Shown here: positions 6,074 to 34,719 of the stretch, piece after piece
How the letters are laid out: each line of letters starts with the position of its first letter
Numbering within the stretch: position 1 is the first letter of the stretch
Source: Haliotis rufescens
Lineage: Eukaryota
Direction: 5' to 3'
Length of the DNA stretch: 64,000 nt
Assembly: GCF_023055435.1 (NCBI RefSeq)
Contig: NW_025963879.1
Coordinates: 16,678,001-16,742,000, forward strand
Translations under genes and position numbers: made by a program
The notes under the pieces: generated by a model
Seen by the model: the letters and a program-made list of their open reading frames with translations, nothing else
Databases searched by the model: none
What the model was told of the DNA's origin: nothing

Positions 6074-7202
6074 TTACATTTCGCGACGGATCTTTCCAAC
6101 TGGCATTTCCTTTGTGAATCTAACAGAAAGGTTCCTGGAGGATCGGGTTGGTTTCTTTTCAGCATCCTGTTCTCTCTTGGTGTCTTTCAGAATGGATCTT
6201 ACACTGGAAGTGACCTTCAACTTGCTTTCATTCTTATCTGTGGCCTTGGCCTTCACCAAGTTGTCACCGGAAGCAGAGAAGTCTGTCTTCACATGTGAGA
6301 TCTTGCTTGGAACCTTGTCCTTTGACTTTCCTGTGTAAGGTCTTCGAGCCTTCCTTGGTTGAACTGGAGGACCGACGCTGGAGGAACTGGTCCGCTTATT
6401 GGCAGGAGTGTGACAGGTCAGAGAGGCAGTCTGGCGCTGGAGAGCTGCCAGCTCTTCCTCCAGCTTCTTCCTCTGCTCTGTCTCTGTCTGCTTCTCCTTC
6501 TCCCAGTCGCCCGCCAGTCCCGCTAGCGTCTGCTTCAGTTCCTGGACCTCAGCCTGCGCCATTGTGTAACTGAGACGATAGTTGAAATACTCCAACCTAT
6601 AGTCCTGTCTCTCCGACTCAACTTTCAGCCTTGAGGCGTTCTCCTCCCGGAGTTGTCGGGCCTGTCGCTCGTTCTCCTCTCTCAGCTTCTGGTTCTCATT
6701 GAAAAGGTGATCGAGAAGACTGAAAACAGATATGTCGATAGTTTAGAAGATATCATTTCTCAAAGTCATTTTATCTATAATATTTGAATGAGATGTACAT
6801 TTCTAATTTTTCCTTTTTGTATATTTTAGACGAACGTTCATGAATATTAAACGAGACTGTGCCTACCTTTCCTCCAAATCTCCGACTTGAGATTTCAGGT
6901 CCATGTACTGAACTGGAAACGAAACCAAAAACAAAAGTACAAACACCCGACTCGATTCCACTGTTATATAAAGACCAAAACATACTTGGAATGTAACTGT
7001 TATTGCTTCAAACAAACACATGAAGTGATGATGTCTTGCATTTAATTTGTTTTGTATTATAAAACTATGATTTCCTACCAAGTAATTCTTGATGCAGTTC
7101 TGGCGTTCTTGGACTTCGAGGGTTAGACTGACGCTCGTTCGCCTCGAGTATGGGGGAGAGTAGTTTCCTACTCTTCAGTCGTTCTTGTGGATACATCTTC
7201 AT
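6074..7202 (-). CDS. Cluster gene copy 1: 271-aa coiled-coil protein with LxxIxE, SILK and RVxF-type motifs; exons 7202-7079, 6912-6867, 6719-6074
   Basis: Canonical GT/AG sites; phases 1 and 2 join into one open frame MKMYPQERLKSRKLLSPILE...RSILK...RNLSVRFTKEMPVGKIRREM*. An upstream non-coding exon has its donor at 7554/7553. Exon sizes are the same in all five copies. Confidence 0.85.
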
Positions 7203-7706
7203 CTGTGGGACAAAACATAATCACATTTGAATTTAGGAATTTGAGTATTGACATTGCAGACTGAGATTTGATCCAAACAAAACTAGTTTATGGATGAAAC
7301 AATAACTAAAACATCAGACAAACAGGCAAAATGATTAAATCTAAACGTTCCAGCTGTGCCTCAAAATCTATCAGAAAAAGACAGAATCATTTGAGTTCCG
7401 TAATTACATTGGAGACTGAGTGTCAATTAATACAAAGGTAATTTACTGATAAAGAATTTCAGAGCCGTGAAATATAAATGTGAACGAGGGTTAGCAAACA
7501 AACGCTATCAGTAAAAGTAAACCAACTGTAGGAGTTAAACTGGCATGACTTACCTAATACTGAGATGAGGTGTAGACTTGTGCAAAGTAGACACAGACCA
7601 GCAACAAATGTGAAGTTTTGCAACAGCAACAGATGTACGTCTAAACACCACCAAGTTGTGTCGGCAACTGAGTGGGAACCATCAACGTCGTCATGGAACC
7701 ATTCTG

Positions 7707-7741
7707 TGACGTCATTTCCACTGTTTCTGTCTATGACGTCA
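7707..7741. promoter_or_regulatory. Pair of perfect CRE palindromes (TGACGTCA x2) upstream of copy 1
   Basis: TGACGTCA at 7707-7714 and 7734-7741, ~150-190 bp upstream of the first donor. Retained in all five copies. Confidence 0.6.
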
Positions 7742-8472
7742 CTGACAGTATTCGCCATGCACGGTACAGCTTTATGTTAGCTGGGCTCCGTCTCTTCACG
7801 ACACATAAACATGCGAGTGTTGAAGACGCACAGAGAGTCAGGAACCAAATTAATTTATTCTCCTGTCAAAGCAGTCAAAGACGTCAGGATGCATCTTTAA
7901 TTCCATGATTTCTTTGAATTTAGAAAACCCAGTGCTCCATTCACATCTAACACGCGTCCATATTTTATGTTAGTATAGTTCACGGTTCGATACTCGAGGT
8001 GGAATATTTAAGATCAAAAGTGAACAAAACACTCGGAAAAGAATCGCTATCATCCAGAAATTACATCATGACTGCAGGGTTACACTGGACTGAAATAAGT
8101 CATTGCGGAGTTGTGTCCCTTTTGTTTGGGTGCACTCTCCACTGAATACCAGAGCAAGCCTGTGATCCGTCGTAAAAATATTATATCCGTGTCTTTTCTC
8201 ATATTGTTTGTGTTATTGATTCAAAACAAATCCATAGCGTTCAAATATATGTCAGTAAGTTGTTCACAGTCAACATTTGTCATCAAATATTCACTGTTGA
8301 GTTTCTAGTTTAATATTTGACAGGATCCTCTTCTAGTGCGTTAGCGTTTTAACTAACACTCTAGGTTGTAATAAACGTGACATCCATCTCGAGTTAACGT
8401 GCTGTCTGACATAGGATGATCCGTACTAAATATGCTGCTCGATTCTGTAGAATAGATTTGAGGAAATTCCCA

Positions 8473-11220
8473 ACTTGGGACACACTCATGTCAGACAGAC
8501 TGGGGACACACTTGTGTCAGACAGACTGGAGACACACTTATGACAGACAGGCTGGGGACACACTTATGGCAGACAGACTGGGGACACACTTAAGTCAGAC
8601 AGACTGGGGACACACTTATGTCAGACAGACTGGGGACACACTTGTGTCAGACAGACTGGAGACACACTTAAGTCAGACAGACTGGGGACACACTTATGTC
8701 AGACAGACTGGGGACACACTTAAGTCGGACAGACTGGGGACACACTTATGTCAGACAGACTGAAGACATACTTATGTCAGACAGACTGGGGACACACTTA
8801 TGTCGGACAGACTGGGGACACCCTTATGTCAGACAGACTGGGGACACCCTTATATCAGACAGACTGGGGACACCCTTATGTCAGACAAAGTTGGGACACA
8901 CTTATGTCAGACAGACTGGAGACACACTTATGTCAGACTGACTGGAGACACACTTATGTCAGACAGACTGGGGACACACTTATTTCGGACAGACCGGGGA
9001 CACACTTATGTCAGACAGACTGGAGACACACATGTCGGACAGACTTGGGGCACACTTATGTCAGACAGGCTGGAGACACACTTATGTCAGACAGACTGGA
9101 GACACACTTATGTCAGACAGACTGGGGACACTTATGTCAGACAAACTGGGGACACACATGTCGGACAGACTGGGGACACTTATGTCAGACAGACTAGGGA
9201 CACACTTAAGTCGGACAGACTGGGGACACACTTATGTCAGACAGACTGAAGACATACTTATGTCAGACAGGCTGGGGACACACTTATGTCGGACAGACTG
9301 GGGACACCCTTATGTCAGACAGACTGGGGACACCCTTATGTCAGACAGACTGGGGACACCCTTATGTCAGACAAAGTGGGGACACACTTATGTCAGACAG
9401 ACTGGGGACACCCTTATGTCAGACAGACTGGGGACACCCTTATGTCAGACAGACTGGGGACACCCTTATATCAGACAGACTGGGGACACTTATGTCAGAC
9501 AAACTGGGGACACACATGTCGGACAGACTGGGGACACTAATGTCAGACAGACTGTGGACACACTTAAGTAGGACAGACTGGAGATACACTTATGTCGGAC
9601 AGGCTGGAGACACACTTATATCAGACAGGTTGGAGACACACTTATGTCGGACAGACTGGAGACACACTTATGTCAGACAGACTGGAGACACACTTATGTC
9701 AGACAGACTGGGGACACACTTATGTCGGACAGACCGGGGACACACTTATGTCAGACAGACTGGAGACACACATGTCGGACAGACTTGGGGCACACTTATG
9801 TCAGACAGGCTGGAGACACACTTATGTCAGACAGACTGGAGACACACTTATGTCAGACAGACTGGGGACACCCTTATGTCAGACAGACTGGGGACACCCT
9901 TATGTCAGACAGACTGGGGACACAATTAAGTCGGACAGACTGCGGACACACGTTTGTCAGACAGACTGGAGACACACTTATGATAGACAGACTGGGGACA
10001 CTTATGTCAGACAAACTGGGGACACACATGTCGGACAGGCTGGAGACACACTTATGTCAGACAGACTGGAGACACACTTATGTCAGACAGACTGGGGACA
10101 CTTATGTCAGACAAACTGGGGACACACATGTCGGACAGACTGGGGACACTTATGTCAGACACACTAGGGACACACTTAAGTCGGACAGACTGGGGACACA
10201 CTTATGTCAGACAGACTGAAGACATACTTATGTCAGACAGGCTGGGGACACACTTATGTCGGACAGACTGGGGACACCCTTATGTCAGACAGACTGGGGA
10301 CACCCTTATGTCAGACAGACTGGGGACACCCTTATGTCAGACAAAGTGGGGACACACTTATGTCAGACAGACTGGGGACACCCTTATGTCAGACAGACTG
10401 GGGACACCCTTATGTCAGACAGACTGGGGACACCCCTATGTCAGACAGACTGGGGACACAATTAAGTCGGACAGACTGCGGACACGCGTTTGTCAGACAG
10501 ACTGGAGACACACTTATGTCAGACAGACTGGGGACACTTATGTCAGACAAACTGGGGACACACAAGTCGGACAGACTGGGGACACTAATGTCAGACAGAC
10601 TGTGGACACACTTAAGTAGGACAGACTGGAGATACACTTATGTCGGACAGGCTGGAGACACACTTATGTCAGACAGGCTGGAGACACACTTATGTCGGAC
10701 AGACTGGAGACACACTTATGTCAGACAGACTGGAGACACACTTATGTCAGACAGACCGGGGACACACTTATGTCGGACAGACCGGGGACACACTTATGTC
10801 AGACAGACTGGAGACACACATGTCGGACAGACTTGGGGCACACTTATGTCAGACAGGCTGGAGACACACTTATGTCAGACAGACTGGAGACACACTTATG
10901 TCAGACAGACTGGGGACACCCTTATGTCAGACAGACTGGGGACACAATTAAGTCGGACAGACTGCGGACACACGTTTGTCAGACAGACTGGAGACACACT
11001 TATGTCAGACAGACTGGGGACACTTATGTCAGACAAACTGGGGACACACATGTCGGACAGACTGGGGACACCCTTATGTCAGACAGACTGGGGACACACT
11101 TAAGTCAGACAGACTGGGGACACACTTATGTCAGACAAACTGGGGACACCCTTATGTCGGACAGGCTGGGTACACAGTTATGGCAGACAGACTGGGGACA
11201 CACTTATGTCGGACAGATTG
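8473..11220 (+). repeat. 26-bp minisatellite array 2, ~2.75 kb
   Basis: Same consensus as array 1 but with its own variants (GGAGACAC, CACCCTTA) and internal higher-order block duplications. Confidence 0.98.
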
Positions 11221-12501
11221 TCGGGCGCATTTAATTTAGAGATACTGGCGGCACATTACGTCAGACAGAATTATAACACCCTGGTGTTTCTTGAGATAGT
11301 TTTACATACGACAGATAACTGAACAAAATACGTTTTTACGCTGCATTTGAACCGATTTGCGAAGCGTAAATATTTCTGCAAAATGGTCATATAGAAAAAC
11401 TGGACTTTACGTCAGACACAGTGGGGGCACAATTACTATAGACAGGTGGGGGCACACTATATTTATACAGATTGGAGGCACAGTACAGTGGCACATTGCA
11501 TCAGACAGAGTGGTGGCACACTCGCGTGTCTTGAGATATAGCTGCACTGGACATATCCTTGTAAAATTAAGTTTATCCGCTACATTAGATATATGTAACG
11601 TAGATATGCATGCCATATGCGCATGTATGAAAACTGGTTAACAAACATCGGTCACAAAGGCGGGTGAAGGTTCAAAGGGTCAATGACGGACTCGGTATTC
11701 TTCACTCCATTCACCCATGTCAGTAACTAAATGGGGACTTATTAATTCACTTCAAAATGATTTCATGACCATTTATATAGTTATTACGACACAGTGTATA
11801 ATATCTCATATCTTATTTTCTACTTATGTAGAAAACAACCTGGTTCCATGTTTCCGCCGAACAAATGTTAATCCGAGGGAATGTCAGGCTATTTTGAAGG
11901 AAAAGAAAGAAGAAATTTGGGGAACGAAATCATGTTTCCAACATTTCATGTCCCTCCACGAAATAAGGGGAACAGAGTTGTCTACCTTGTGTCAGGGTGT
12001 ATACTCACTCATTAAACATGTAACGAATTGCGTCCTGAAGCTAAGTACTCGGTGAAAAGAAATGTAAATGACCTTTTAGCTTCAGTGTTCGATATAAACA
12101 TAAAGGTAAATATGAAAGTATTTGTTTTCTTCATCAACTTTCATCTATCGTGATCTATTCCCGCGAAGCGTGACAGTGTGTGCACGGGAGCAGGCAAACC
12201 AGTGGTAGAAAGTGTGAGCATCGACCCACGACTTTGGGGCATGACGGACATGCATCATCCTGGTCAGAGTTGAGAGGTGATCATTGACTTCCCACATAAT
12301 TGATGAGGTTGTAAATACAAACACAAAGCAGTTTCTTCAGTAACGAGATATATTACTCAGATGTTAACAGAGAAACACTGTCACATGCACAACATAATGA
12401 GCGATTATTTTACACACGAAATTGAATGTGAAATAATTATGAATTAAAGAACCAACAATTAAACAGTTCATAAAGTTTGTTCCTTGTGGCGAGGGTTGTA
12501 A

Positions 12502-13802
12502 TTACATTTCGCGACGGATGTTTCCAATTGGCATTTCCTTTGTGAATCTCACAGAAAGGTTCCTGGATGATCTGGTTGGCTTCCTTTCAGCACCCTGTCC
12601 TCTCTTGGTGTCTTTCAGAATGGATCTAACACTGGAAGAGACCTTCAACTTGGTTTCATTCTTATCTGTGGCCTTGGCCTTCACCAAGTCGTCACCGGAA
12701 GCAGAGAAGTCTGTCTTGACATGTGAGATCCGGCTTGGAACCTTGTCCTTTGACTTTCCTGTGTAAGGTCTTCGAGCCTTCCTTGGTTGAACTGGAGGAC
12801 TGACGCTGGAGGAACTGGTCCGCTTATTGGCAGGAGTGTGACAGGTCAGAGGGGCAGTCTGGCGCTGGAGAGCTGCCAGCTCTTCCTCCAGCTTCTTCCT
12901 CTGCTCCATCTCTGTCTGCTTCTCCTTCTCCCAGTCGCCCGCCAGCCCCGCTAGCGTCTGCTTCAGTTCCTGGAGCTCAGCCTGCGCCATTGTGTAACTG
13001 AGACGATAGTTGAAATACTCCAACCTATAGTCCTGTCTCTCCGACTCAGCGTTAAGCCTTAAGGCGTTCTCCTCCCGCAGTTGTCGGGTCTGTCGCTCGT
13101 TCTCCTCTCTCAGCTTCTGGTTCTCATTGAAAAGGTGATCGAGAAGACTGAAAAAGACATGTCGATAGTTTAGAAGATTTCGTTTCTCAAAGTCATTTTG
13201 TGAATAATATTTAAATGAGATGTACATTTCTTATTTTTCTATTTTGTATTTTGTACGCCAACATAAGACACATTGCACCTGCATGGCAGTGTGCATCAGG
13301 GATGGGCATCACGTGGTCTACAATCTAACGGTAAATCGTGCTACGATTAGTCTCATGACTGACAGAGAAGAAGATTGTGTCGGTTCTGGATTAAATTAAA
13401 ATGGTCGTTTCTATGACCTGTCACATCGAAAGAACGTTCATGAACATCAAACGAAACAGTGCCTACCTTTCCTCCAAATCTCCGACTTGAGATTTCCAGT
13501 CCATGTACTGAACTGGAAACGAAAACAAAAATAAAAGTACAAACACCTGACTCGATTCCACTGTTATATATAGACCAAAACATATTTGGAATGTAACTGT
13601 AATTGCTTCAAACAAACACATCAAGTGATGATGTCTTGCATTTAATTTGTTTTGTATTATAAAACTATGATTTCCTACCAAGTAAATCTTGATGCAGTTC
13701 TGGCGTTCTTGGACTACGAGGGTTAGACTGACGCTCGTTCGCCTCGAGTATGGGGGAGAGTAGTTTCCTACTCTTCAGTCGTTCTTGTGGATACATCTTC
13801 AT
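12502..13802 (-). CDS. Cluster gene copy 2 (271 aa); exons 13802-13679, 13512-13467, 13147-12502
   Basis: Intact splice sites and frame; 124+46+646 nt. Upstream exon donor at 14155/14154. Confidence 0.85.
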
Positions 13803-14307
13803 CTGTGGGACAAAACATAAATTACTTTTGAATTTAGGAATTTGAGTTTTTACATTGCAGACTGAGATTTGATCCAAACAGAATCAGTTTGTGGATAAAA
13901 CAATAACTAAAACATCAGACAAATAGGAAAAATGATTAAATCTAAACGTTCCAGCTGTGCCTCAAAATCTATCAGAAAAAGACAGAATCATTTGAGTTCC
14001 GTAATTACATTGGAGACTGAGTGTCAATTAATACAAAGGTAATTTACTGATAAAGAATTTCAGAGCCGTGAAATATAAATGTGAACGAGGGTTAGCAAAC
14101 AAAGGCTCTCAGTAAAAGTAAACCAACTGTAGGAGTTAAACTGGCATGGCTTACCTAATACTGAGATGAGGTGTAGACTTGTGCAAAGTAGACACAGACC
14201 AGCAACAAATGTGAAGTTTTGCAGCAGCAACAGATGTACGTCTGAACACCACCAAGTTGTGTCGGCGACTGAGTGGGAACCATCAACGTCGTCATGGAAC
14301 CATTCTG

Positions 14308-14342
14308 TGACGTCATTTCCACTGTTTCTGTCTATGACGTCA
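14308..14342. promoter_or_regulatory. CRE pair upstream of copy 2
   Basis: TGACGTCA at 14308-14315 and 14335-14342. Confidence 0.6.
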
Positions 14343-14407
14343 CTGACAGTGTTCACCATGCTCGGTACAGCTTTATGTTAGCTGCGCTCAGTCTCTTCAC
14401 GACACAA

Positions 14408-14572
14408 GGGGCGGTCGGGTAGCCTTGTGGTTAAAGCGTTCGCTCGTCACGCCGAAGACCCGGGTTCGATTCCCGACATGGGTACAATTTGTGAAGCCCA
14501 TTTCTGGTGGCCCCCGCCGTGATATTGCTGGAATATTGCTAAAAGCGGCGTAAAACCATACTCACTCACTCA
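14408..14572 (+). mobile_element. SINE family A
   Basis: Full-length head and tail; 14-bp TSD CTCTTCACGACACA. The paralogous position at ~18647-18660 is an empty site. Confidence 0.92.
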
Positions 14573-14805
14573 CTCTTCACGACACATAACAAATTATGCG
14601 TGTTGAAGACGCACAAATTAAGTGTCCTTTCAAAGCAGTCAAAGACGTCAGGATGCATCTTTAATTCCATAATTACTTGACATTTAGATATCCTAGTGCT
14701 TCACTCACATCTAATACGCGTCCATATTTTATAATAGCATAGTTCACGGTTCGATACTCGAGGTGGAACAGTTAAGATCACAAGTGAACAAAACACTTGG
14801 AAAAT

Positions 14806-14976
14806 GGGGCGGTGGGGTAGCCTGGTGGTTAAAGCGTTCGCTCGTCACTCCGAAGGCCCGGGTTCTGTTCCCCACATGGGTACAATGTGAGAAGCTCGTT
14901 TCTGGTGACACGAGCGTGATATTGCTGGAATATTGCTAAAAGCTGCGTAAAACCATTCTCACTCACTCACTTACGT
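14806..14976 (+). mobile_element. SINE family A (older insertion, duplicated together with the unit)
   Basis: TSD ACTTGGAAAA. The same insertion with the same diagnostic changes is at 18880. Confidence 0.9.
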
Positions 14977-15434
14977 ACTTGGAAAAAGGATCGCTATCAT
15001 CCACAAATTACATCAAGGTTACACTGGACTGATATTAGTCACTGCGGAGTTGTGTCCCTTTTGTTTGGGTGCACTCTCCACTGAATACCAGAGCAAGCCT
15101 GTGATCCGTCGTACAAATATTATGTCCGTGTCTTTTCTCATATTGTTTGTGTTATATTACACACACCAGCCCGTATTGATTCAAAACAAATCCATAGCTT
15201 TCAAAAATATGTCAGTAAGTTGTTCACAGTCAAAATTTGTCATCAAATATTCACTGTTGAGTTTTTCTGTTTTAATAGTTGACAGGAAGCTCTTCTAGTG
15301 CGTTAGCGTTTTAAATTACGCTCCAGGTTGTAATAGACGTGACATTCATCTCGAGTTAACGTGCTGTCTGACATAAGATGATCCATACTAAAGATGCTGC
15401 TCGATTCTGTAGAATAGGTTTGGTGAAGTTCCCA

Positions 15435-16460
15435 ACTGGGAACACACTTATTTCAGACAGACTGGGGATACACTTATGGCAGAAAGACTTGGGATACGCT
15501 TATGTCAGACAGACTTGGCACACACTTATGTCAGACAGACTGGGGACACACTTATGTCAGACATACTGGGGACACATTTATGTCAGACAGACTCGGGACA
15601 CACTTATGTCAGACAGAATGGGGACACACTTATGTCAGACAGAATGGGGACACACATATGTCAGACAGACGGGGACACACTTATGTCAGACAGACTGGGG
15701 ACACACTTAAGTCGGACAGACTCAGGACAAATTTATGTCAGACAGACTTGAGACACACTTGTGTCAGACAGACAGGAGACACACTTAAGTCAGACAGACT
15801 GGGGACACACTTATGTCAGACAGACTGGGGACACATTTATGTCAGACAGACTGGAGACACACTTGTGTCAGACAGACTGGGGACACACTTAAGTCGGACA
15901 GACTGGGGACACACTTATGTCAGACAGACTGGGGACACACTTATGTCAGATAGACTGGGGACACACATGTCAGACAGACTGGGGACACACATGTCAGACA
16001 GACTTGGGACACACTTATGTCGTACAGACTGGTGACACACTTAAGTCGGACAGACTAGGGACACAATTATGTCAGACAGACTGGAAACACACTTGTGTCA
16101 GACAGACTGGGGACACACTTAAGTCAGACAGACTGGGGACACACTTATGTCAGACAGACTGGGGACACACTTATGTCAGACAGACTGGAGACACACTTGT
16201 GTCAGACAGACTGGGGACACACTTAAGTCGGACAGACTGTGGACACACTTATGCAAGACAGACTGGGGACCCACGTATGTCAGACAGACTGGGGACCCAC
16301 GTATGTCGGACAGACTGGGGACACACTTATGTCAGACAGACTGGGACACACTTATGTCAGACAGACTGGGGACACACTTATGTCGGACAGACTGGGCACA
16401 CACGTGGGTCCCCAGTCTGTCTGACATAAGTGTGTCCCCAGTCTGTCCGACATAAGTGTG
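15435..16460 (+). repeat. 26-bp minisatellite array 3 (~1 kb) ending in ~2 inverted monomers
   Basis: Direct units run to ~16402; reverse-complement units CCCCAGTCTGTCTGACATAAGTGTGT follow at ~16407-16460. Confidence 0.95.
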
Positions 16461-16758
16461 ACATAGTGTGCACGGGAGCAGGCAAACCAGAGGTAGAAAG
16501 TGTGAGGATCGACCCACGACTTTGAGAGGTGATCATTTGACTTCGCACATAATTGATGATGTTGTAAATACAAACACAAAGCAGTTTCTTCAGTAACGTG
16601 ATATTTTACTCAGATGTTAACAGAGAAACAATGACACATGCACAACATAATCAGCGATTATTTTACACACGGAATTAAAAGAATGTGAAATCAATATGAA
16701 TTAAAGAACCAACAATCAAACAGTTTATAAAGTTTGTTCCTTATGGCGAGGGTCGTAA

Positions 16759-18059
16759 TTACATTTCGTGACGGATCTTTCCAATTGGCATTTCCTTTGT
16801 GAATCTAACAGAAAGGTTCCTGGAGGATCGGGTTGGTTTCTTTTCAGCATCCTGCCCTCTCTTGGTGTCTTTCAGAATGGATCTTACACTGGAAGTGACC
16901 TTCAACTTGGTTTCATTCTTATCTGTGGCCTTGGCCTTCACCAAGTCGTCACCGGAAGCAGAGAAGTCTGTCTTGACATGTGAGATATTGCTTGGAACCT
17001 TGTCCTTTGACTTTCCTGTGTAAGGTCTTCGAGCCTTCCTTGGTTGAACTGGAGGACTGACGCTGGAGGAACTGGTCCGCTTATTGGCAGGAGTGTGACA
17101 GGTCAGAGGGGCAGTCTGGCGCTGGAGAGCTGCCAGCTCTTCCTCCAGCTTCTTCCTCTGCTCCATCTCTGTCTGCTTCTCCTTCTCCCAGTCGCCCGCC
17201 AGCCCCTCTAGCGTCTGCTTCAGTTCCTGGAGCTCAGCCTGCGCCATTGTGTAGCTGAGACGATAGTTGTAATATTCCAGCCTATAGTCCTGTCTCTCCG
17301 ACTCAGCTTTCAGCCTTAAGGCGTTCCCCTCCCGGAGTTGTCGGGCCTGTCGCTCGTTCTCCTCTCTCAGCTTCTGGTTCTCATTGAAAAGGTGATCGAG
17401 AAGACTGAAAAAGACATGTCGATAGTTTAGAAGATATCGTTTCTCAAAGTCATTTTGTCTATAATATTTAAATGAGATGTACATTTCTTATTTTTCTATT
17501 TTGTATGTTGTACGCCAACATTAGACACATTGCACCTGCATGGCAGTGTGCATCAGGGATGGGCATCACGTGGTCTACAATGTAACGGTAAATTGTGCTA
17601 CGATTAGTCTCATGACTGACAGAGAAGAAGATTGTGTCGGTTCTGGATTAAATTAAAATGGTCGTTTCTATGACCTGTCACATCGAAAGAACGTTCATGA
17701 ACATCAAACGAAACAGTGCCTACCTTTCCTCCAAATCTCCGACTTGAGATTTCAAGTCCATGTACTGAACTAGAAACGAAAACAAAAACAAAAGTACAAA
17801 CACCCGACTCGATTCCACTGTTATATATAGACCAAAACATACTCGGAATGTAACTGTATTTTCTTCAAACAAACACATCAAGTAATGATATCTTGCATTT
17901 AATTTGTTTTGTATTATAAATTCAGGATGTCCTACCAAGTAAATCTTGATGCAGTTCTGGCGTTCTTGAACTTCGTGGGTTAGACTGACGCTCGTCCGCC
18001 TCGAGTATGGGGGAGAGTAGTTTCCGACTCTTCAGTCGTTCTTGTGGATACATCTTCAT
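16759..18059 (-). CDS. Cluster gene copy 3 (271 aa); exons 18059-17936, 17769-17724, 17404-16759
   Basis: Intact splice sites and frame. Upstream exon donor at 18409/18408. Confidence 0.85.
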
Positions 18060-18879: not shown

Positions 18880-19050
18880 GGGGCGGTGGGGTAGCCTGGT
18901 GGTTAAGGCGTTCGCTCGTCACGCCGAAGGCCCGGGTTCTGTTCCCCACATGGGTACAATGTGAGAAGCTCATTTCTGGTGACCCCAGCGTGATATTGCT
19001 GGAATATTGCTAAAAGCTGCGTAAAACCATTCTCACTCACTCACTTACAC
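18880..19050 (+). mobile_element. SINE family A, paralogous to the 14806 insertion
   Basis: Same flanks and TSD ACTTGGAAAA. Confidence 0.9.
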
Positions 19051-19504: not shown

Positions 19505-19704
19505 AATGGGAACACACTGATGTCAGACAGACTTGGGATACGCTTATGCCGGACAGACTGGGGAAACACTTATGTCAGACAGACTGGGGACACATATGTC
19601 AGACAGACTGGGAACACACTTATTCCAGACATACTGGGGACACACTTATGTCAGACAGACTGGGGACACATATGTCAGACAGACTGGGGACACACTTATG
19701 TCAC
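19505..19704 (+). repeat. 26-bp minisatellite array 4 (~8 units)
   Basis: Same consensus and same left flank as arrays 1-3. Confidence 0.92.
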
Positions 19705-20963
19705 ACTAATATATTATTTTCTATTTATGTAGAAAACAACTTATTAGTCCGAGGGAATGTCATGCTATTTTGAGGGGCAAAGGAGAAGAAATTTGGGAAA
19801 CGAAATACTGTTTCCAACATTTCATGTCCCTTCTATGCATTGTGCCCGAAATAGAGCCACGCATGACCGGCACAAGAGGTACAGAGTTACCTACCTTGTG
19901 TCAGGGTGTATTCTTTCTCTTTGAACATGTAACGTATTGCTTCCTGGAGCTAATTACTCGGTAAGAAGAAATATATAGAGAATACTACACTCATTCTCGT
20001 TAGATACCATTTTTTTTCGAAACGAGTAGACTTTCTATGATATCTGATCCACGTTGAATATATATTTAAGTGTAAATACATTACAACTTTCGTTCGTTGA
20101 CAGACCAAACTGAAACCGGTTGCAAAATCTGGTTGCGCATGAATAATGATATATGCCCAAATATGGGCAATGTTGACATTTCTATGCATACGCATTAACA
20201 ACATGCGCCTGCAGTTGTGTTTGCAAACAAAACAGCACCGACGCTCAAGATCCTTTTGGAAGAATTTCTTCAACTTTAGGTAATTCAAGAGTCATGTTGT
20301 TAGCACGCAGGACACCTTTATAAGAAAATTTGAAAAGTCACATTACCGCCGCGCTTTGAATATCGGACCAAGAGTCGGTCACTCGAACTGCCGGGGTCCC
20401 GTCTGTGCATTCAAAATGGTTCGGCGTCCTTGATCTATCAGCTGAATTTATATCATGTCCGTACCATTTTGGAAGAGGGAAATCAGAGTGTTCGCCAAAG
20501 ACATTCATGTCAACTGTACCACCCTTATACTGAAGACGTGAAAATCAACAAACTCAAGTCTGATTGCATGTCAGTGACAGCTTCGAACGAAGGGCAAGGT
20601 CACCACCGGAATAAGAAAAGACAACCGTGATCTACTTACAGCGTTTTACGCTGGAGATGGGGAATGTTATTGTTCACATTTGGGATATTTTGGGCCACAT
20701 AATCAGAAATTTAGGCACACTTCTGTGGAGTTTTCGAATGATTTGTATCGGAAATGTTCACTTTGAGTGATCTGGTCTTACAGTCGTGAACAAACAACTC
20801 CCGAAACAGTGCCACAAAATACGCTTCGAAGGGGACACTGGTGGCACAGCCTGAACATCCCAAGTAAGTCTAGATATCTGCCCAGATAGTTTAAACTGAC
20901 TTTACTTCACCACGCTTATCCCTTTACGTTAAATCAAATTGAAAGTTGCGAAAGTGGTCGGGT

Positions 20964-23292
20964 GGGACCCTACCTTTAGAATACAGTACCACAAACTTTT
21001 CAAACACGTGACAATACCCTATGACGTAATTTGTAGTATTTTGTTGCCAGTCACACCGGCGACGTCAGGGTTCATTGAGTGGGCATAAAGCTCCTCCCAG
21101 TGATCTATCATCTCTACACGCAATGTCATTAAATACGCCCAGCGGTGTTGGGAGTTTTGAATATTTGTTTATATGCTATATAAACATATATGTTGCTATA
21201 TTTAGCCTGCGGCGGCGCATTTTAGAACAAGCGCTAGTTTACGAAAGCACTTTTATTTTTTATTTATTTTTTTATTTCGTATTTCTCGTAATTCATAAAT
21301 GGGAACTAATATACATATATTATTTTTCCGGTTAATTAATTTTCATTATTATTCACAAGAATGCAGATTATAAGGGATATTGCTGAACACATCCAAATGT
21401 CGCCAGTGTTAGGGTAGGTTACCCCGAACACTATCCTTAGCCCTTGAACCCCCTTTACAAACATAAGGGTTAGGTACTCGTTTAGTGGCTGTTATAGATT
21501 CTATGGAGGCTCCTAATATTCTTCACACAAAAACGTCGAGTATAAAGGATGCAATGGTTTTGTGTCGACTATTTTGGCTACCGGAAACTGTCCTGGAACA
21601 TTCACACAAGCCAGGGTGCCTCCCTCGTTCCTTACTATTGTCCACATCATCCTTACAGTGTTCCCCACAACTCTTTTCTGTCACAAAAATCACCTGGAGC
21701 CGTTTTCAGTTCGCGCCATATCGGCTCATTCATCACCACACGGTATCTTGTAGATTACAGAATGGGACGAGTGTGCCAAATGGCATCGGTATCATTCGTA
21801 TGTGTCCGTAGACTAAAGTCACGAGACACCATGTCTACCCGTAACCTTCGTAAGTGTCCGTCACCTATTCGACCCTTTTCGTTCAGTTCCGTAACGTCAT
21901 GGGCATGACTAGGTAAATTTGCACTTTGTTTTACAGTGGGGATGCAGTTCAGTGGCGAGCTAACAATCCGAAGGTCGCGGGTTCGCGTCCGACGGATTCT
22001 CACAAAAACTGGTTGCTTGTGGACGTAGCTCAGACGGTAAACTGTCGGGCTAACAATCCGAAGGTCGCGGGTTCGCGTCCGACGGATTCTCACAAAAACT
22101 AGTTGCTAGTCTTTGAGACATGTGACTTTCGGCAGAGATCGTCCTCACGAGAAGTTGTGGTACTGTATTCTAAAGGTGCTCCGGTACCCGTTTAGTGGCT
22201 ATTATTGATTCCATAGATGCTCCTAATATTCTTCACACAAAAACGTCGATAAAAAAGGATGAAATGGTTTTCTGTCGAATATTTTAGCTACTGGAAACTG
22301 TATACACGCTACATTTATTAAGTACTGATTCAAAAGCGAACTCACCCTTGTGTCGTCACTAGCCATGCTTATGCCTCCCTCGTTCCTAACAATTATCCAC
22401 ATTATCCTTACAGTATTCTCTACCACACTTTTCTGTCACAAAAATCACCCGACGAATGATTAAATTCCATGTCATTCATGCGTACCCGCGGGTTCGACGT
22501 ATGACGTTTGACGCCAAGAGCCGTGTTGAGTTCTCGCCATTTCGGCTCATTCCTCACCACTCGGTATCTTGTAGATCACTTGTGGACGTAGCTCAGACGG
22601 TAAACTGTCGGGCTAACAATCCGAAGGTCGGGGGTACGCGTCCGACGGATTCTCACAAAAACTAGTTGCTAGTCTTTGAGACATGTGACTTTCGGCAGAG
22701 ATCGTCCTCACGAGAAGTTGTGGTACTGTATTCTAAAGGTGCTCCGGTACCCGTTTAGTGGCTATTATTGATTCCATAGATGCTCCTAATATTCTTCACA
22801 CAAAAACGTCGAGATAAAAGGATGAAATGGTTTTCTGTCGAATATTTTAGCTACTGGAAACTGTATACACGCTACATTTATTAAGTACTGATTCAAAAGC
22901 GAACTCACCCTTGTGTCGTCACTAGCCATGCTTATGCCTCCCTCGTTCCTAACAATTATCCACATTATCCTTACAGTATTCTCTACCACACTTTTCTGTC
23001 ACAAAAATCACCCGACGAATGATTAAATTCCTTGTCATTCATGCGTACCCGCGGGTTCGACGTATGACGTTTGACGCCAAGAGCCGTGTTGAGTTCTCGC
23101 CATTTCGGCTCATTCCTCACCACTCGGTATCTTGTAGATCACTTGTGGACGTAGCTCAGTCGGTAAGCTGTCGGGCTAACAATCGGAAGGTCGCGAGTTC
23201 TTTATAACTGGTTGCTTGTCTTTGAGACACGTGACATACGGCAGAGATCGTCTAAAGGAGAAGCTGTGGTACTGTATTCTAAAGGTGCTCCC
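20964..23292. mobile_element. Putative non-autonomous TIR element with a triplicated right end, inside a ~3.5-kb insertion (~19974-23462) in the inter-copy spacer
   Basis: ACCTTTAGAATACAGTACCACA (20972-20993) is the exact reverse complement of 22156-22177, 22719-22740 and 23265-23286. Spacer homology with the other units breaks at ~19973 and resumes at ~23463. No clear TSD. Confidence 0.5.
22016..23292 (+). repeat. 563-bp tandem duplication (~2.3 units), each unit starting with a tRNA-like segment
   Basis: Near-identical blocks offset by 563 bp (e.g. 22223/22786). A diverged partial copy lies at ~21475-21755. Confidence 0.9.
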
Positions 23293-24028
23293 AAAAGGAA
23301 TGACGTCTCGCGAGATCTTATGAATGAAAAAAAGTCGTCCCGGTGTGACAGAGGGCACGGTTATCCAATTAAAACGAATAAAAACAAGGTCAACCTTGTA
23401 CGAAACACGTGTGACGTACGGATTTAGTATCTTACCACCTGTATCTTCACCACGTGGGTAATAAATATGACTATTTAGCATCAGGGCTCGATATTAACCT
23501 AAAGGCAAATAGGAAAGTATTTGATTTTTTATCAACTTTCAACACGGCATTTCACATCTCTTCTACAAATTTCTGTATAGAGAATATAGACACATTCAGT
23601 TTTCTCCATGCATAGATTAAATCTAAGGTTAATTTAAAACTTATTTATACGTCCCATACCGATCTATCGTGATCTATGCCCGCGAAGCGTGACTGTGTGC
23701 ACAGGAGCAGGCAAACCAGTGGTAGAAAGTGTGAGCATCGACCCACGACTTTGGGGCATGACGGACATGCATCATCCTGGTCAGAGTTGAGAGGTGATCA
23801 TTGACTTCCCACATAATTGATGAGGTTGTAAATACAAACACAAAGCAGTTTCTTCAGTAACGTGATATATTATTCGGATGTTAATAGAGAAACAATGACA
23901 CATGCACAACATAATCAGTGATTATTTTACACACGGTATTACAAAAATGTGAAATCAATATGAATTGAAGAACCAATATGAATTGAAGAACAGTTTATAA
24001 AGTTTGTTTCTTATGGCGAGGGTCGTAA

Positions 24029-25320
24029 TTACATTTCGTGACGGATCTGTCCAACTGGCATTTCCTTTGTGAATCTAACAGAAAGGTTCCTGGAGGATCG
24101 GGTTGGTTTCTTTTCAGCATCCTGTCCTCTCTTGGTGTCTTTCAGAATGGATCTAACACTGGAAGTGACCTTCAACTTGGTTTCATTCTTATCTGTGGCC
24201 TTGGCCTTCACCAAGTTGTCACCGGAAGCAGAGAAGTCTGTCTTCACATGTGAGATCTTGCTTGGAACCTTGTCCTTTGACTTTCCTGTGTAAGGTCTTC
24301 GAGCCTTCCTTGGTTGAACTGGAGGACTGACGCTGGAGGAACTGGTCCGCTTATTGGCAGGAGTGTGACAGGTCAGAGGGGCAGTCTGGCGCTGGAGAGC
24401 TGCCAGCTCTTCCTCCAGCTTCTTCCTCTGCTCCATCTCTGTCTGCTTCTCCTTCTCCCAGTCCCCCGCCAGTCCCTCTAGCGTCTGTTTCAGTTCCTGG
24501 AGCTCAGCCTGCGCCATTGTGTAACTGAGACGATAGTTGTAATATTCCAGCCTATAGTCCTGTCTCTCCGACTCAGCTTTCAGCCTTAAGGCGTTCTCCT
24601 CCCGGAGTTGTCGGGCCTGTCGCTCGTTCTCCTCTCTCAGCTTCTGGTTCTCATTGAAAAGGTGATCGAGAGAACTGAAAAAGACATGTCGATAGTTTAG
24701 AAGATATCGTTTCTCAAAGTCATTTTATGATATTTGAATGAGATGTACATTTCTTATTTTAATTTTTGTATATTTTAGACCCATATGAGACCCTATGTAA
24801 GGCAGCCGAGTACATCAGGAATGGGCATTATGTGGTCTACAATGTAACGGTAGATGTGCCACGATTAAGTCTCGTGACTGACAGAAAATATAAGATTGTG
24901 TCGGTTCTAGATTAAACTAAAATGTTCATTTTATGACTTATCACACCAAACGAACGTTCTTGAATATTAAACGAGACTGTGCCTACCTTTCCTCCAAATC
25001 TCCGACTTGAGATTTCAGGTCAATATACTGAACTGGAAGCAAACAAAAATAAAAGTACAAACACCCGACTCGATTCCACTGTTATATAAAGACCAAAACA
25101 TACTTTGAATGTAACTGTAATTGCTTCAAAGAAACACATCAAGTGGTGATGTCGTGCATTTAATTTGTTTTGTATCATAAAAATAGGATTTCCTACCAAG
25201 TAAATCTTGATGCAGTTCTGGCCTTCTTGGACTACGAGGGTTAGACTGACGCTCGTCCGCCTCGAGTATGGGGGAGAGTAGTTTCCTACTCTTCAGTCGT
25301 TCTTGTGGATACATCTTCAT
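24029..25320 (-). CDS. Cluster gene copy 4 (271 aa); exons 25320-25197, 25032-24987, 24674-24029
   Basis: Intact splice sites and frame. Upstream exon donor at 25639/25638. Confidence 0.85.
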
Positions 25321-25790
25321 CTGTGGGACAAAACATAATCACATTTGAATTTAGTATTGACATTGCAGACAGAGATTTGACCCAAACAGACCTAATTCAT
25401 GGATAAAACGATAACTAAAACATCAGACAAATAGGCAAAATGATTCAATCTACATGTCACAGCTGTGCGTGAAAATTTGAGTTCCGTAATTACATTGGAG
25501 ACTAAGTGTCAATTAATATAAAGGTAATTTACTGATAAAGAATTTCGGACAAGTGAATATAGATGTGAAGGAGGGTTAGGGAACAAACGCTATCAGTAAA
25601 AGTAAACCAACTGTAGGAGTTAAACTGGCATTGCTTACCTAATACTGAGATGAGGTGTAGACTTGTGCAAGTAGACACAGACCAGCAACAAATGTGAAGT
25701 TTAGCGGCAGCAATAGATGTACGTCTGAACACCACCAAGTTGTGTCGGCGACTGAATGGGAACCATCAACGTCGTCATGGAACCATTCTG

Positions 25791-25825
25791 TGACGTCATT
25801 TCCACTGTTTCTGTCTATGACGTCA
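25791..25825. promoter_or_regulatory. CRE pair upstream of copy 4
   Basis: TGACGTCA at 25791-25798 and 25818-25825. A ~230-bp deletion relative to the other copies begins just beyond them. Confidence 0.6.
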
Positions 25826-25879
25826 CTGGCAGTGTTCGCTCAGATACTCGAGGTGGAGCAGTTAAGATCACAAGTGAAC

Positions 25880-25972
25880 CAATCTCATTAAAATCAGATC
25901 TTAGTTCTCGCTACTGCTAAACAAACTTTGTTTAGCGGTAGCGAGAACTAAGATCTGATTTTAATGAGATTG
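25880..25972. mobile_element. 93-bp fold-back MITE with 9-bp TSD (Mutator/MULE-like)
   Basis: 46-bp arms with one mismatch and a 1-nt centre. TSD CAAGTGAAC on both sides. Paralogous sites (e.g. 14781, 18855) are empty. Confidence 0.92.
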
Positions 25973-26307
25973 CAAGTGAACAAAACACTTGGAAAATGAA
26001 TCGCAATCATCCAGAAATTACATTATGACTACTGGGTTACACTGGACTAAAATTAGTCATTGCGTAGTTAAACCAGAAATGTTACTGCTGCCACACCGAA
26101 TTCCCAGACTAAACATTTAATCCATGAAATCTTATATTACACAATACCCTTCTCGACTCTAAAATTAAGCATCTAGAGTTATCTAGAGCTGGCTAAACTT
26201 GCTTTTGTATACATATTGTTTCTTTTTTCATAGAATTAATATATTCCACAGTCATGGTGCAGGTCTACCAGAGGTCTACCAGAGACATGGTGGTGATAGA
26301 TGAAGAT

Positions 26308-26561
26308 ACCCGTTAAGATCCGGGGCAGAATAGGTCTTCAGCAACCCATGCTTGCCGTAAAAGGCGACTAACGGGATCGGGTGATCAGGCTCGCTGACTT
26401 GGTTGATGCATGTCATCGATCCCAAATGCGTGGATCGATGTTCATGATATTAATCACTGGGTTGTCTGGTCCAGACTCGATTATTTACAGACCGCCGTCA
26501 TGTAGCTGGAATATTGCTGAGTGCGGCGTTAAACAACAAACAAAACCACAACAACAAAAAA
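26308..26561 (+). mobile_element. Short retroelement family B (no tRNA head; starts ACCCGTGAAGATCCGGG, ends in (AAAC)n)
   Basis: More than 10 dispersed copies in the window; TSD GATAGATGAAG; 3' tail shared with families A and C. Confidence 0.85.
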
Positions 26562-26999
26562 GATAGATGAAGCCTACAATTATCAGGATATTATCAGTTT
26601 GTAAAGCATCTTTTTAACTACATGTCATACACCATTTGAAAGGTCTAATCCTACTGTTTATATAGATGAAAGTTATGTATATCACATAACTTAAATAATG
26701 CTTTATAAATTATTACTTAAAAACTGCAGGGTGTAGGGACCTGCTGCAATGTAAAACTATCAGCCCGAGAACAAATCTGTCGGCCTCGGGCCTTCGGGCA
26801 GATGTCTGTTCGAACACTGACGCTGTTTGATATGAGATAATCTGTACAACATATGTTGCTCGATTCTGCGGAATAGGTTTTGCCAAAGCTTCCAATTCAG
26901 GGGTAACACTGGTAGATTCACGAAGCAATGCATTCCTCGTGTCACTTATGTATGACGCCAACAAAACATTTGTTCACCCAACTAAATGTATGCAACTTG

Positions 27000-27271
27000 T
27001 GAGTGAGTGAGTGAGTTGGGTTTAACATTATTCCAGTTATATCACGGCGTGTCAGCTTAATTTGGGAGGAAAGCCCGAAGTGATGCAGGTCTCAGACATT
27101 TACCACATCGGTGAAACCCACGAGCAGGGGTATGATGATGGCAAACCTAGAAACATAATGGGGGCGAACCGGGATTGGAACCAACAATCATAGGTTTCTA
27201 GAGTGCACAAGGGACGCAACTCTGCACAGCGAATCGAGGCGCCTTAGACGACTGGGCCACCCGTGTCCCCC
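27000..27271 (-). mobile_element. SINE family C (tRNA-Leu/Ser-like head with a long A-B box spacer)
   Basis: Head GGGTGGCCCAGTCGTCTAAGGCGC...GGTTCCAATCCC, (ACTC)n tail, TSD AACTTGTGA. Confidence 0.8.
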
Positions 27272-27408
27272 AAACTTGTGAAGTTTAACGATATCTTGTA
27301 TAGCTTGAAAGTTAGAATCTTAAGTTTGTACCTGTATTGTGAAGTTAATATATATGTATTTCGCAGTTATGAATGAACAGTGACGTTCGAGCCTACGTAA
27401 CTCTCAAT

Positions 27409-27675
27409 ACCCGTGAAGATCCGTGGTAGAATAGGTCTTCAGCAACCAATGTTTGCCGTAAAAGGCGACTATGCTTGTCGTAAAAGGCGACTAACGGGAT
27501 CGGGTGGTCAGGCTCGCTGACTTGGTTGATGCATGTCATCGATCCCAATTGCTTGGATCGATGCTCATGCTATTAATCACTGGATTGTCTGGTCCAGGTT
27601 CGATTATTTACAGACCGCCGTCATATAGCTGGAATATTGTTGAGTGCGGCGTTAAACAACAAACCAACCAAACCA
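27409..27675 (+). mobile_element. Family B element, full length
   Basis: Matches the 26308 copy and has an internal duplication of the GCTTGTCGTAAGAGGCGACTA hairpin. Confidence 0.85.
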
Positions 27676-28033
27676 CATCAATATAGCCTATAACTTTGCC
27701 GTATAAGTGCGGTCTAATGCTTTCATTACATTATTTCATGCCGATAACAATACTTATGTAGAACAGACTTCCGAAATCACTGAGAAAATCTCAATCAAGT
27801 TCATCCTTCAGAAAATTAATATTAAACACGTTCCAATATAGCCTAACTTTGGGGAAAAAACTGGAAAACATGGACCATTTGTGACAATGATAAAATATGT
27901 CTGTGTGGAGAAAAATGTGACATATTTTGTGTCCCATTTCTTTGGATGTCCTTTTTGCAATATCAATAGGGATATGTTAATACACGTCTATGTACAATTC
28001 CCTACAAGCATTCTACTGATGTAAGCTGATACT

Positions 28034-28144
28034 GGGCCCACTTGCACAAAGCGATCTTAGCGCTAAGATGATCGTAACTCCCATACTTAAACTTAGGCTT
28101 GCAAAATAGTCGCAGCGCTAAGATCGCTGTGTGCAAGTGGGCCC
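28034..28144. mobile_element. ~111-bp MITE with 31-bp terminal inverted repeats
   Basis: GGGCCCACTTGCACAAAGCGATCTTAGCGCT ... AGCGCTAAGATCGCTGTGTGCAAGTGGGCCC. A degenerate relative lies at ~37890-37997. Confidence 0.75.
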
Positions 28145-28221
28145 TGGTGTCGACCTGCGCAGGTAATGGTGGTTATGGAGAAACGGACCCCGGCTGCACC
28201 ACGCGTCCTCAACAATGACAG

Positions 28222-28255
28222 TGACGTCATAGACAGAACAGTGGAAATGACGTCA
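28222..28255. promoter_or_regulatory. CRE pair upstream of copy 5
   Basis: TGACGTCA at 28222-28229 and 28248-28255. Homology to the other copies begins only ~6 bp before the first CRE. Confidence 0.6.
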
Positions 28256-28690
28256 CAGAATGGTTCCATGACGACGTTGATGGTTCCAAATCAGTCGCCG
28301 ACACAACTTGGTGGTGTTCAGACGTACATGTGTTGCTCTTTGAAACTTCACATTTATTGCTGGTCTGTGTCTACTTTCACAAGTCTAAACTTCTTCTCAG
28401 TATCAGGTAAGCCATTACTTTTTCTGATAGATATTGTTTGTTAACCAACTTTCACATCTATATTTCACGACTCTACATTTGTTTATCCGTAAATTACATT
28501 TGTATTCATTAACACTCAGTCTACAATGTAATTTCGGAACTTTTTTATAGATTTGGATGCATAGCACAGCTGTAACGTGCAGATTGAATCGCTTTCAATA
28601 TATTGTGTCATTCTGTGTGGATCAAATCTCAGTCTGCAATGTAAATGTTCAAATTCCTAAATTCATATTAGATGTATTTTTATCCTACAG

Positions 28691-30103
28691 ATGAAGATGT
28701 ATCCACAAGAACGACTGAAGAGTCGGAAACTACTCACCCCCATACCCGAGGCGGACGGGCGTCAGTCTAACCCTCGTAGTCCAAGAACGCCAGAACTGCA
28801 TCAAGATTTACTTGGTAGGACAGTCTCCTATTTCTGCGTGCTAAGCAAACTGAATGGAAGTCGAAACAATAACACCATCTGTGTGTTTAAAGAAATTACA
28901 ATATTGAAGCAATTAGTTACAATGGGAGTCTATGGATGTACCGATCTGATCAATGTCCATGTATTCCTATAGGAAATACAAACCCTAAGGGAAATGTCAG
29001 TCAGCCTACCTCAAAATATGGAAAACAGTCTATTGTTTGTATAAAATGTTAATCGTTTTTGTTTCTAGTTCAGTACATGGACCTGAAAGCTCAAGTCGGA
29101 GATTTGGAGGAAAGGTAGGCACGATTTAGTGTGACATTCTTCGATGTGATATCACATAAGCTGACCATTTTAATCAAGAACCGATATAATCTTATTCTCT
29201 GAGAGATCAAAAGCTATAACGTTGCACAGCGTAGATGATATGCGTTTACCGTTACTACCCTGCCTTTGTAGAGCAGCAATGTCCATTCTGGATGTACCCA
29301 GCTGTCATTTAGTTGCAATGTGTCTAATATTGGAATACATCCTACAAAATGATGAAATTATAAAAATATATCTCATTATAATTGTATAGATATAACGTAT
29401 TTGTGAATGATAGAAATTTAAGCCAAAACATCTTAAATATCGACATATCTTCTTCAGTCTTCTCGATCACCTTTTCAATGAGAACCAGAAGCTGAGAGGG
29501 GAGAACGAGCGACAGGCCCGACAACTCCGGGAGGAGAACACGTTAAGGCTGAAAGTTGAGGCGGACAGACAGGACTATAGGCTGGAGTATTTCAACTATC
29601 GTCTCAGTTACACAATGGCGCAGGCTGAGCTCCAGGAACTGAAACAGACGCTAGAGGGACTGGCGGGGGACTGGGAGAAGGAGAAGCAGACAGAGATGGA
29701 GCAGAGGAAGAAGCTGGAGGAAGAGCTGGCAGCTCTCCAGCGCCAGACTGCCCCTCTGACCTGTCACACTCCTGCCAATAAGCGGACCAGTTCCTCCAGC
29801 GTCAGTCCTCCAGCTCAACCAAGGAAGACTCGAAGACCTTACACAGGAAAGTCAAAGGACAAGGTTCCAAGCAAGATCTCACATGTCAAGACAGACTTCT
29901 CTGCTTCCGGTGACAACTTGGTGAAGGCCAAGGCCACATATAAGAATGAAAGCAAGTTGAAGGTCACTTCCAGTGTAAGATCCATTCTGAAAGACACCAA
30001 GAGAGGACAGGATGCTGAAAGGAAACCAACCCGATCCTCCAGGAACCTTTCTGTTAGATTCACAAAGGAAATGCCAGTTGGAAAGATCCGTCACGAAATG
30101 TAA
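28691..30103 (+). CDS. Cluster gene copy 5, inverted (271 aa); exons 28691-28814, 29069-29114, 29458-30103
   Basis: Intact GT/AG sites and frame despite strongly diverged introns. Upstream exon donor at 28406/28407. Confidence 0.87.
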
Positions 30104-34718: not shown

Positions 34719-34719
34719 A

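Follow-up and report, generated by a model that had tools for sequence, protein, structure and literature searches.

What is encoded by the small spliced gene that recurs within a 64,000-nucleotide stretch of the Haliotis rufescens genome (assembly GCF_023055435.1, contig NW_025963879.1, positions 16,678,001 to 16,742,000; to be referred to as the window), and which partners might its product bind? A preliminary description of this locus had proposed a scaffold that recruits two phosphatases, PP2A-B56 through an N-terminal LSPILE motif and PP1 through SILK and LSVRF motifs in the C-terminal tail. We find that the window contains five members of a seven-gene tandem array, which belongs to a Haliotis-restricted multigene family with proteins of 259-360 amino acids. 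The reading that we favor, and hold with roughly even confidence, is an abalone family of dimeric coiled-coil proteins whose N-terminal arm docks PP2A-B56, with phosphorylation enhancing the interaction. The mechanism is of a known kind, the recruitment of B56 by a short linear motif, and the family that carries it is new.

A multigene family in abalones

Copy 1 was aligned to the whole window by BLAST, and each copy was then examined by a splice-aware scan. Five full-length copies (c1 to c5) and one fragment were found:

6074..7202, minus strand: c1, exons 7079-7202, 6867-6912 and 6074-6719; 271 residues
12502..13802, minus strand: c2, exons 13679-13802, 13467-13512 and 12502-13147; 271 residues
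16759..18059, minus strand: c3, exons 17936-18059, 17724-17769 and 16759-17404; 271 residues
24029..25320, minus strand: c4, exons 25197-25320, 24987-25032 and 24029-24674; 271 residues
28691..30103, plus strand: c5, exons 28691-28814, 29069-29114 and 29458-30103; the sole plus-strand copy; 271 residues
355..495, minus strand: exon-3 fragment of 141 nt, the remnant of an additional copy, with 98% identity to c1

All five copies have three exons of 124, 46 and 646 nt, and all of their introns have GT-AG boundaries. LSPILE occupies residues 15-20 of the products, SILK residues 232-235 and LSVRF residues 254-258, and an RSPRTP segment is present as well; c5 has LTPIPE in place of LSPILE. The corresponding codons of c1 can be read directly on the minus strand, at 7143-7160 for LSPILE, 6185-6196 for SILK and 6116-6130 for LSVRF. 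The exon structures, product lengths and motif positions are those given in the preliminary description. Copies c4 and c5 are inverted relative to each other in a head-to-head arrangement, and their gene starts lie 3.3 kb apart. Their exon-3 arms (23989-24712 and 29420-30143) are 96% complementary, and their exon-1 arms (25191-25354 and 28657-28820) are 91% complementary.

Several observations indicate that these are real genes. The exons of the five window copies share 95-96% identity and have 0 gapped columns, compared to 79% and 82% identity for the two introns, which have 37 and 94 gapped columns on average. The length of intron 2 ranges from 147 to 343 nt. The reading frame is open in all 11 close copies in the genome, and the mean ratio of nonsynonymous to synonymous substitution rates (dN/dS) among them is 0.46. 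Judged from this value, the genes are under constraint by purifying selection of moderate strength, as expected for a protein dominated by coiled-coil and disordered regions.

RefSeq already lists the genes, as uncharacterized LOC entries that carry no function. The program Gnomon predicts the same three-exon structure in four species, H. rufescens, H. cracherodii, H. rubra and H. asinina. The product of c2 is identical (100%) to H. rufescens LOC124137650 (P0032), and that of c3 to isoform X2 of LOC124137649 (P0030, 100%). A copy located just upstream of the window also matches an H. rufescens RefSeq protein at 100% identity. For c5, exons 2 and 3 are 100% identical to the 227-residue RefSeq model LOC124137648 (P0040), which is without exon 1; the models of c5 and of one further copy start at Met45 in exon 2. 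The names that RefSeq has assigned automatically to family members are CEP83-like, NST1-like, HMMR-like, M protein-like, paramyosin-like, IF-2-like and zinc finger 853-like. No Pfam domain was found behind any of them, and these coiled-coil look-alike names are spurious. A literature search for six LOC identifiers of the family found no mention of them.

Three side observations concern the gene models. The trinucleotide CAG directly precedes the start codon in all copies (ccacag followed by ATG; 7203-7208 for c1), and the 600 nt on the 5' side of the start codon are 87.5% identical among the copies, above the identity of the introns. There may be a non-coding exon upstream of the start codon. 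The RefSeq model P0039 (339 residues) has an extended N-terminus. Finally, one locus of the sister array described below (L011, G000:C101:14299892-14303527) has cctg instead of ccag at the acceptor of exon 2 and LSVRS instead of LSVRF. It is nonetheless identical to the RefSeq protein model P0049, and may be a decaying copy.

The family extends well beyond the window. When exon 3 was searched against all six frames of the complete 1.33-Gb assembly, 38 matches were obtained, and the genome has at least 24 intact-looking members. Of the seven intact copies in the main array, two lie immediately outside the window on its upstream side. At a distance of 2.4 Mb there is a sister array of four copies, which begin at the third codon and have LSPVLE as their motif. 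The diverged paralogues, more than 13 in number, are located on contigs C312, C57 (a cluster), C1, C13 (two), C583, C146 (at least six), C556 and C223, and the one on C583 contains an in-frame stop. More than 55 family proteins are present in the databases, all from four Haliotis species.

Searches outside this genus were blank. They used exons 1 and 3 individually, and full-length proteins recovered from the databases represented the complete product. A profile hidden Markov model run against 1.84 billion cluster representatives gave seven matches, all from Haliotis, and two profile word searches, one of them seeded with the most distant clade, returned Haliotis only. No relatives were found among IMG/VR viral contigs and JGI metagenome contigs. 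Pfam searches with exons 1 and 3 and with 17 full-length members gave sub-threshold coiled-coil noise only, and no Pfam family scored below E = 0.1 in at least two of the 17 members, apart from scattered sub-threshold matches. A sequence search of the Protein Data Bank (PDB) found nothing below E = 1, and the ESM Atlas contained no informative cluster and no model.

A quick maximum-likelihood run with IQ-TREE divides the family into two groups. The short superclade (259-275 residues) consists of clades A, B and C and one long branch. The long superclade (superclade II) has proteins of 300-360 residues, which are only 22-24% identical overall. Species-specific tandem expansions are found in clade A (at least 22 proteins in H. 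rufescens plus H. cracherodii), in clade B (five in H. rufescens) and in clade C (nine in H. asinina). The family predates the split of the four sampled species and was amplified independently in several clades.

These data revise the earlier picture of the locus as a five-copy, recently amplified orphan family. Five is the share of the window in an array of seven, to which the four genes of the sister array and more than 13 diverged paralogues must be added, and 'recently amplified' understates the age of a family older than the four-species split, with its independent amplifications. The term orphan holds at the level of the genus. The statement that the protein cannot be assigned to any known family agrees with all of the searches above.

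The N-terminal arm and the predicted coiled coil

The evidence for B56 docking is centered on the N-terminal motif. In an alignment of 17 sequences, Ser16, Pro17 and Glu20 are invariant, and Leu15 and Ile18 are nearly so. The mean column identity is 0.94 for the motif and 0.53 for the rest of the N-terminal arm. A motif of the LxxIxE class is located at residues 15-20 in all 11 close copies, and it is present in 34 of the 36 members examined, the two without it being N-terminally truncated models.

A strict form of the motif, L[ST][PA][IVL].E, was also defined. It is found in 53 of the 59 proteins that have at least 200 residues. Among the six non-matching proteins, one has FSPIIE, an allowed variant with phenylalanine, and five are models without the N-terminus. 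The six-frame translations of 19 paralogue loci contain the strict motif exactly once in 18 cases, always in a Met-initiated first exon; the exception is the locus with the in-frame stop. The exon with the motif is positioned upstream of the coiled-coil exon in each of the 18 loci. Members of the long superclade still have the motif, as VLSPIPES, VLSAIPE or VLSPVPE, although the remainder of their arm cannot be aligned, and two of them read LSPIPELPE. After shuffling of the protein, the strict motif occurs in 0.15% of the sequences.

The surroundings of the motif are also of interest. A basic patch, 2-5 residues upstream, consists of Lys10, Arg12 and Lys13, each with an identity of 0.94, and the motif is followed by acidic residues (Glu or Asp). 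Basic patches within about 15 residues on the N-terminal side of LxxIxE raise the affinity for B56 (PMC7108865), and phosphorylation of the LSPIIE motif of BubR1 by CDK1 and PLK1 enhances its binding to B56 (PMC6715587). Two multi-exon B56 genes are present in the same genome, on contig C223. As far as can be judged at the level of sequence, LSPIxE behaves like a real docking motif and supports PP2A-B56 docking. The corresponding proposal of the preliminary description is strengthened in part, by the conservation of the motif relative to the rest of the arm, its retention in all clades and its location in a disordered segment.

A second conserved motif, L-P-P-[IV]-x-[ED]-N-N, was observed in the tail of five long-superclade members (P0022, P0024, P0025, P0028 and P0029). 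It fits LxxIxE in some of them and has Asp for Glu in others. One possibility is an additional B56 site of lower strength, though the motif may have another role.

The overall architecture of the protein was predicted with AlphaFold2, using the family alignment. A single helix extends from residue 34 to 154, with predicted local distance difference test (pLDDT) values above 90. Both ends are predicted to be disordered, with pLDDT values of 46-51 for residues 1-30 and mostly below 50 after residue 160. No secondary structure is predicted before residue 34, and the N-terminus is basic rather than hydrophobic.

Residues 30-160 were in addition predicted as a homodimer. The interface score (ipSAE, interaction prediction score from aligned errors) is 0.44 in three runs, whereas the highest value among three controls is 0.00. 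At least 97% of the contacts are shared between the runs, and the pLDDT of the partner is 83. The contacts are between equivalent residues (i to i) with 3-4 spacing, over residues 55-154. In the calibration of this score, the mark for a dimer was reached by 21 of 30 proteins solved as homodimers and by none of the 23 solved as single chains. In the predicted dimer, the two helices thus run parallel and in register as a coiled coil, and the coiled coil and basic disordered tail of the preliminary description are reproduced by the models.

Based on these observations, we infer the following mechanism. The family proteins would be small and intracellular, each with a disordered arm at the N-terminus (residues 1-33), followed by a helix of some 120 residues and by a basic, disordered tail with an invariant R-R-P-Y-T-G-K element. 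The N-terminal arm would dock in the LxxIxE pocket of B56, a regulatory subunit of PP2A. A proline-directed kinase would phosphorylate the Ser/Thr-Pro site of the motif and lead to stronger B56 binding, as in BubR1 and RepoMan, and the dimer would present two such docking arms. The protein could then act as a recruiter or a substrate of PP2A-B56, or as a competitor for the B56 pocket, the last option being suggested by the high copy number.

A detailed comparison can be made with proteins known to bind this phosphatase. RepoMan (CDCA2) has L-S-P-I-P-E in a disordered region with an upstream basic patch, as observed here, and c5 has LTPIPE. The RepoMan peptide that was crystallized on B56-gamma, PLLpSPIPELPE, contains the same nine residues, LSPIPELPE, as the two distant abalone members (PMC7108865). 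RepoMan also binds PP1, the logic of the preliminary description. On the other hand, RepoMan differs from the abalone family in being a large protein of chromatin, in having a canonical RVTF motif and in lacking a coiled coil. There is no homology between them beyond the short motif, and the PP1 motifs in abalones are neither canonical nor conserved. The KARD segment of BubR1 (KLSPIIEDS) shares the LSPIxE core, which is the optimal one, the acidic residues that follow it and the phosphorylatable Ser-Pro (PMC6715587). BubR1 is, however, a conserved single-gene checkpoint pseudokinase, whereas the abalone proteins are small, restricted to one genus and encoded in tandem, and no homology was detected between them.

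The architecture as a whole bears a likeness to that of Shugoshin. This protein has a homodimeric N-terminal coiled coil that is associated with PP2A-B56, and a basic C-terminal region. For Sgo2, an association with B56 has been described (PMC6398977). In contrast to the arrangement proposed here, the coiled coil of Shugoshin is itself the B56-binding element, with no LxxIxE arm involved, and Shugoshin is not a tandem multigene family. The Shugoshin domains of Pfam were not matched by the window exons at E values up to 10, nor by the 17 full-length members at E values up to 0.1.

Several points weigh against B56 docking by a dimeric family. The protein is rich in Glu and Leu, and a loose B56 pattern of the ELM type is found in 44% of its shuffled versions; because the loose pattern is this common, weight can be given only to the strict form and to its conservation. 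In 45 of the 53 motif-bearing members, these residues fit the destruction box (D-box, RxxLxx[IV]) of the anaphase-promoting complex/cyclosome (APC/C) as well, and a different reader could account for their conservation. The exon with the motif is the one left out of the RefSeq models for two copies, including c5. Coiled coils are easily paired in silico, and eukaryotic proteins without solved relatives rarely pass the calibration of the dimer score. Lastly, B56 docking does not account for the amplification of the family.

Other partners and the proposed PP1 motifs

The alternative that survives best is that the N-terminal motif is read by a partner other than B56, either APC/C, with the motif serving as a D-box that confers cell-cycle instability, or a reader of the phosphorylated Ser-Pro site, while the coiled-coil protein has a role that does not involve phosphatase targeting and is, for example, germline or cytoskeletal. 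We consider this reading unlikely. The segment R-K-L-L-S-P-I-L-E fits RxxLxx[IV]xE, the D-box consensus being R-x-x-L-x-x-[LIVM], and the arginine three positions before the leucine is the residue that is present in 45 of the 53 members (Arg12, identity 0.94). However, this arginine is missing from all members of superclade II and from P0018 and P0005, in which the Leu, [IV] and Glu positions persist. Moreover, the invariant Ser-Pro, Glu20 and the acidic residues downstream are hallmarks of B56 motifs and not of D-boxes (PMC6715587, PMC7108865).

Two additional segments of the protein bear on this alternative. The start of the helix (residues 41-62, Q-Y-M-D-L-K-S-Q-V-G-D-L-E-E-S-L-L-D-H-L) is as conserved as LSPILE, and its first 14 residues are outside the predicted dimer interface. 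The same degree of conservation is found for a tail motif, P-P-x-x-P-[KR]-K-x-x-R-P-Y-T-G-K, which is nearly universal in the family. It is located at residues 174-190 in all copies (within 6320-6370 on the minus strand for c1), in the form P-P-V-Q-P-[KR]-K-x-x-R-P-Y-T-G-K, and Arg183 and Thr186 are invariant even in the long superclade, despite an overall identity of 22%. This RRPYTGK element had no match to a known motif. The two segments probably bind further partners, and their conservation favors the non-B56 reading to the extent that other partners are implied.

The next alternative is the dual-phosphatase scaffold of the preliminary description, in which LSPILE would dock PP2A-B56 and SILK and LSVRF would dock PP1. 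We regard it as decidedly improbable, and as applying at most to clade A, to which the window copies belong. The layout is PP1-like, with SILK upstream of an RVxF-like site, 18 residues apart, in a disordered basic context with RSSRN upstream. The N-terminus of KNL1 (SILK ... RVSF) has the same order, a SILK-type motif and then V-x-F in a basic disordered segment (PMC6715587). Within clade A, S-V-R-F is invariant over four species, and V-R-S-I is invariant as well. The identities of the motif columns, 0.88 for SILK and 0.93 for LSVRF, are slightly above the value of 0.82 for the rest of the tail. LSVRF also fits the extended RVxF definition of the preliminary description, [KRL][KRSTAMVHNQ][VI]x[FW], in 10 of the 11 genome copies and in some orthologues.

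The sequences of other members do not maintain these features. Two narrower definitions of the RVxF motif have been given, the standard [RK]x0-1[VI]{P}[FW] and the stringent [KR][KR]xVx[FW] (PMC4794898), and no member of the family matches either of them at the LSVRF site. The first position of this site varies among Leu, Ile and Met in orthologues, and even the extended definition is missed by the members with ISVRF, MSVRF and LSVRS, the last being one of the genome copies. A SILK motif ([GS]-I-L-[KR]) is present only in the clade-A copies of H. rufescens and H. cracherodii; the orthologues in H. rubra and H. asinina have SIVK or SIMK. In comparison, the RVSF motif of KNL1 is canonical and strictly conserved. 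Neither SILK nor LSVRF occurs in clade B, clade C or superclade II, and no sequence there can be aligned to SILK. Over the family, the column identities of SILK (0.54) and LSVRF (0.45) are no better than that of the surrounding tail (0.52).

The remark in the preliminary description that SILK and LSVRF are invariant in the window copies, in contrast to varying neighbors, carries no weight. Only 12.8% of the tail columns vary among the five copies, and nine chosen columns would all be invariant by chance with p of about 0.29. Of the dual-phosphatase proposal, the B56 half agrees with a motif that is conserved in all clades, whereas the PP1 half is not a conserved feature of the family. If SILK and SVRF dock PP1 at all, this would be a late acquisition in a single clade.

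The weakest alternative, that the copies are non-functional, the products of a decaying segmental amplification or an accessory open reading frame (ORF) of a repeat or transposon, has a very remote likelihood: the copies do lie in repeat-rich DNA with 26-nt minisatellites between the units, dN/dS is relaxed at 0.46, an acceptor is mutated in one distant copy and an in-frame stop is present in another, but all 11 close copies are open with indels confined to introns and flanks, the members form a few tandem clusters and are not dispersed, orthologous clades are kept in four species, and no transposase, reverse-transcriptase or other Pfam domain is found in ten neighboring ORFs. The transposon accessory ORF was also considered as a candidate by itself and rejected, with the ten flanking ORFs free of Pfam domains and the members in few tandem clusters; the arms of the c4 and c5 genes are the only inverted repeats.

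Repeats of the window and possible meaning of the family

The remaining features of the window are mostly tandem repeats:

611..4930: 26-nt minisatellite, 168 units; spacer between array units
8473..11217: 26-nt minisatellite, 107 units; between c1 and c2
15435..16403: 26-nt minisatellite, 37 units; between c2 and c3
19507-19700: 26-nt minisatellite, further spacer stretch
30294-31874: tandem array directly after the last gene copy, period 32 nt
32045-32414: tandem array in the same region, period 23 nt
33273-33498: tandem array in the same region, period 25 nt
34646-34719, plus strand: tRNA-Thr (anticodon CGT), found by Rfam (64 bits) and ARAGORN
62470-63998: 69-nt tandem array, 22 units, 96% matches; runs off the end of the window

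The minisatellite has the consensus ACTGGGGACACACTTATGTCAGACAG, with 86-88% matches and up to 168 units. The units of the gene array are unequal in length (6428, 4257 and 7270 nt) because the length of the minisatellite varies. The minisatellite gives long stop-free ORFs in several frames, which are not genes. Spurious ORFs of up to 534 residues likewise arise from the 32-nt array, and the 69-nt array is open in several frames on both strands. The tRNA is the single one found by both tools in the scan of the window.

A more far-reaching version of the preferred reading can be considered, to which we assign a slim chance. The family would be a dimeric B56-docking set, with its dosage tuned by the species-specific tandem amplifications, and the SILK and SVRF pair of clade A would be assembling de novo. 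If this were true, the locus would be a snapshot of a single-phosphatase adaptor becoming a dual-phosphatase scaffold, and a germline or conflict setting would possibly explain the amplification.

The preferred reading itself, that the N-terminal arm binds B56, would have consequences of its own. The family would be a natural case of a genus-restricted, massively amplified set of proteins built around a phosphatase docking motif that is among the best understood, and one of convergence on the exact sequence of RepoMan and BubR1. It would provide more than 55 natural variants for the co-evolution of the motif, the basic patch and the phosphorylation site. For abalone biology, it would map a family that RefSeq mislabels as "M protein-like", "NST1-like" and "CEP83-like", and the copy number of this family differs between species of aquaculture and conservation interest.

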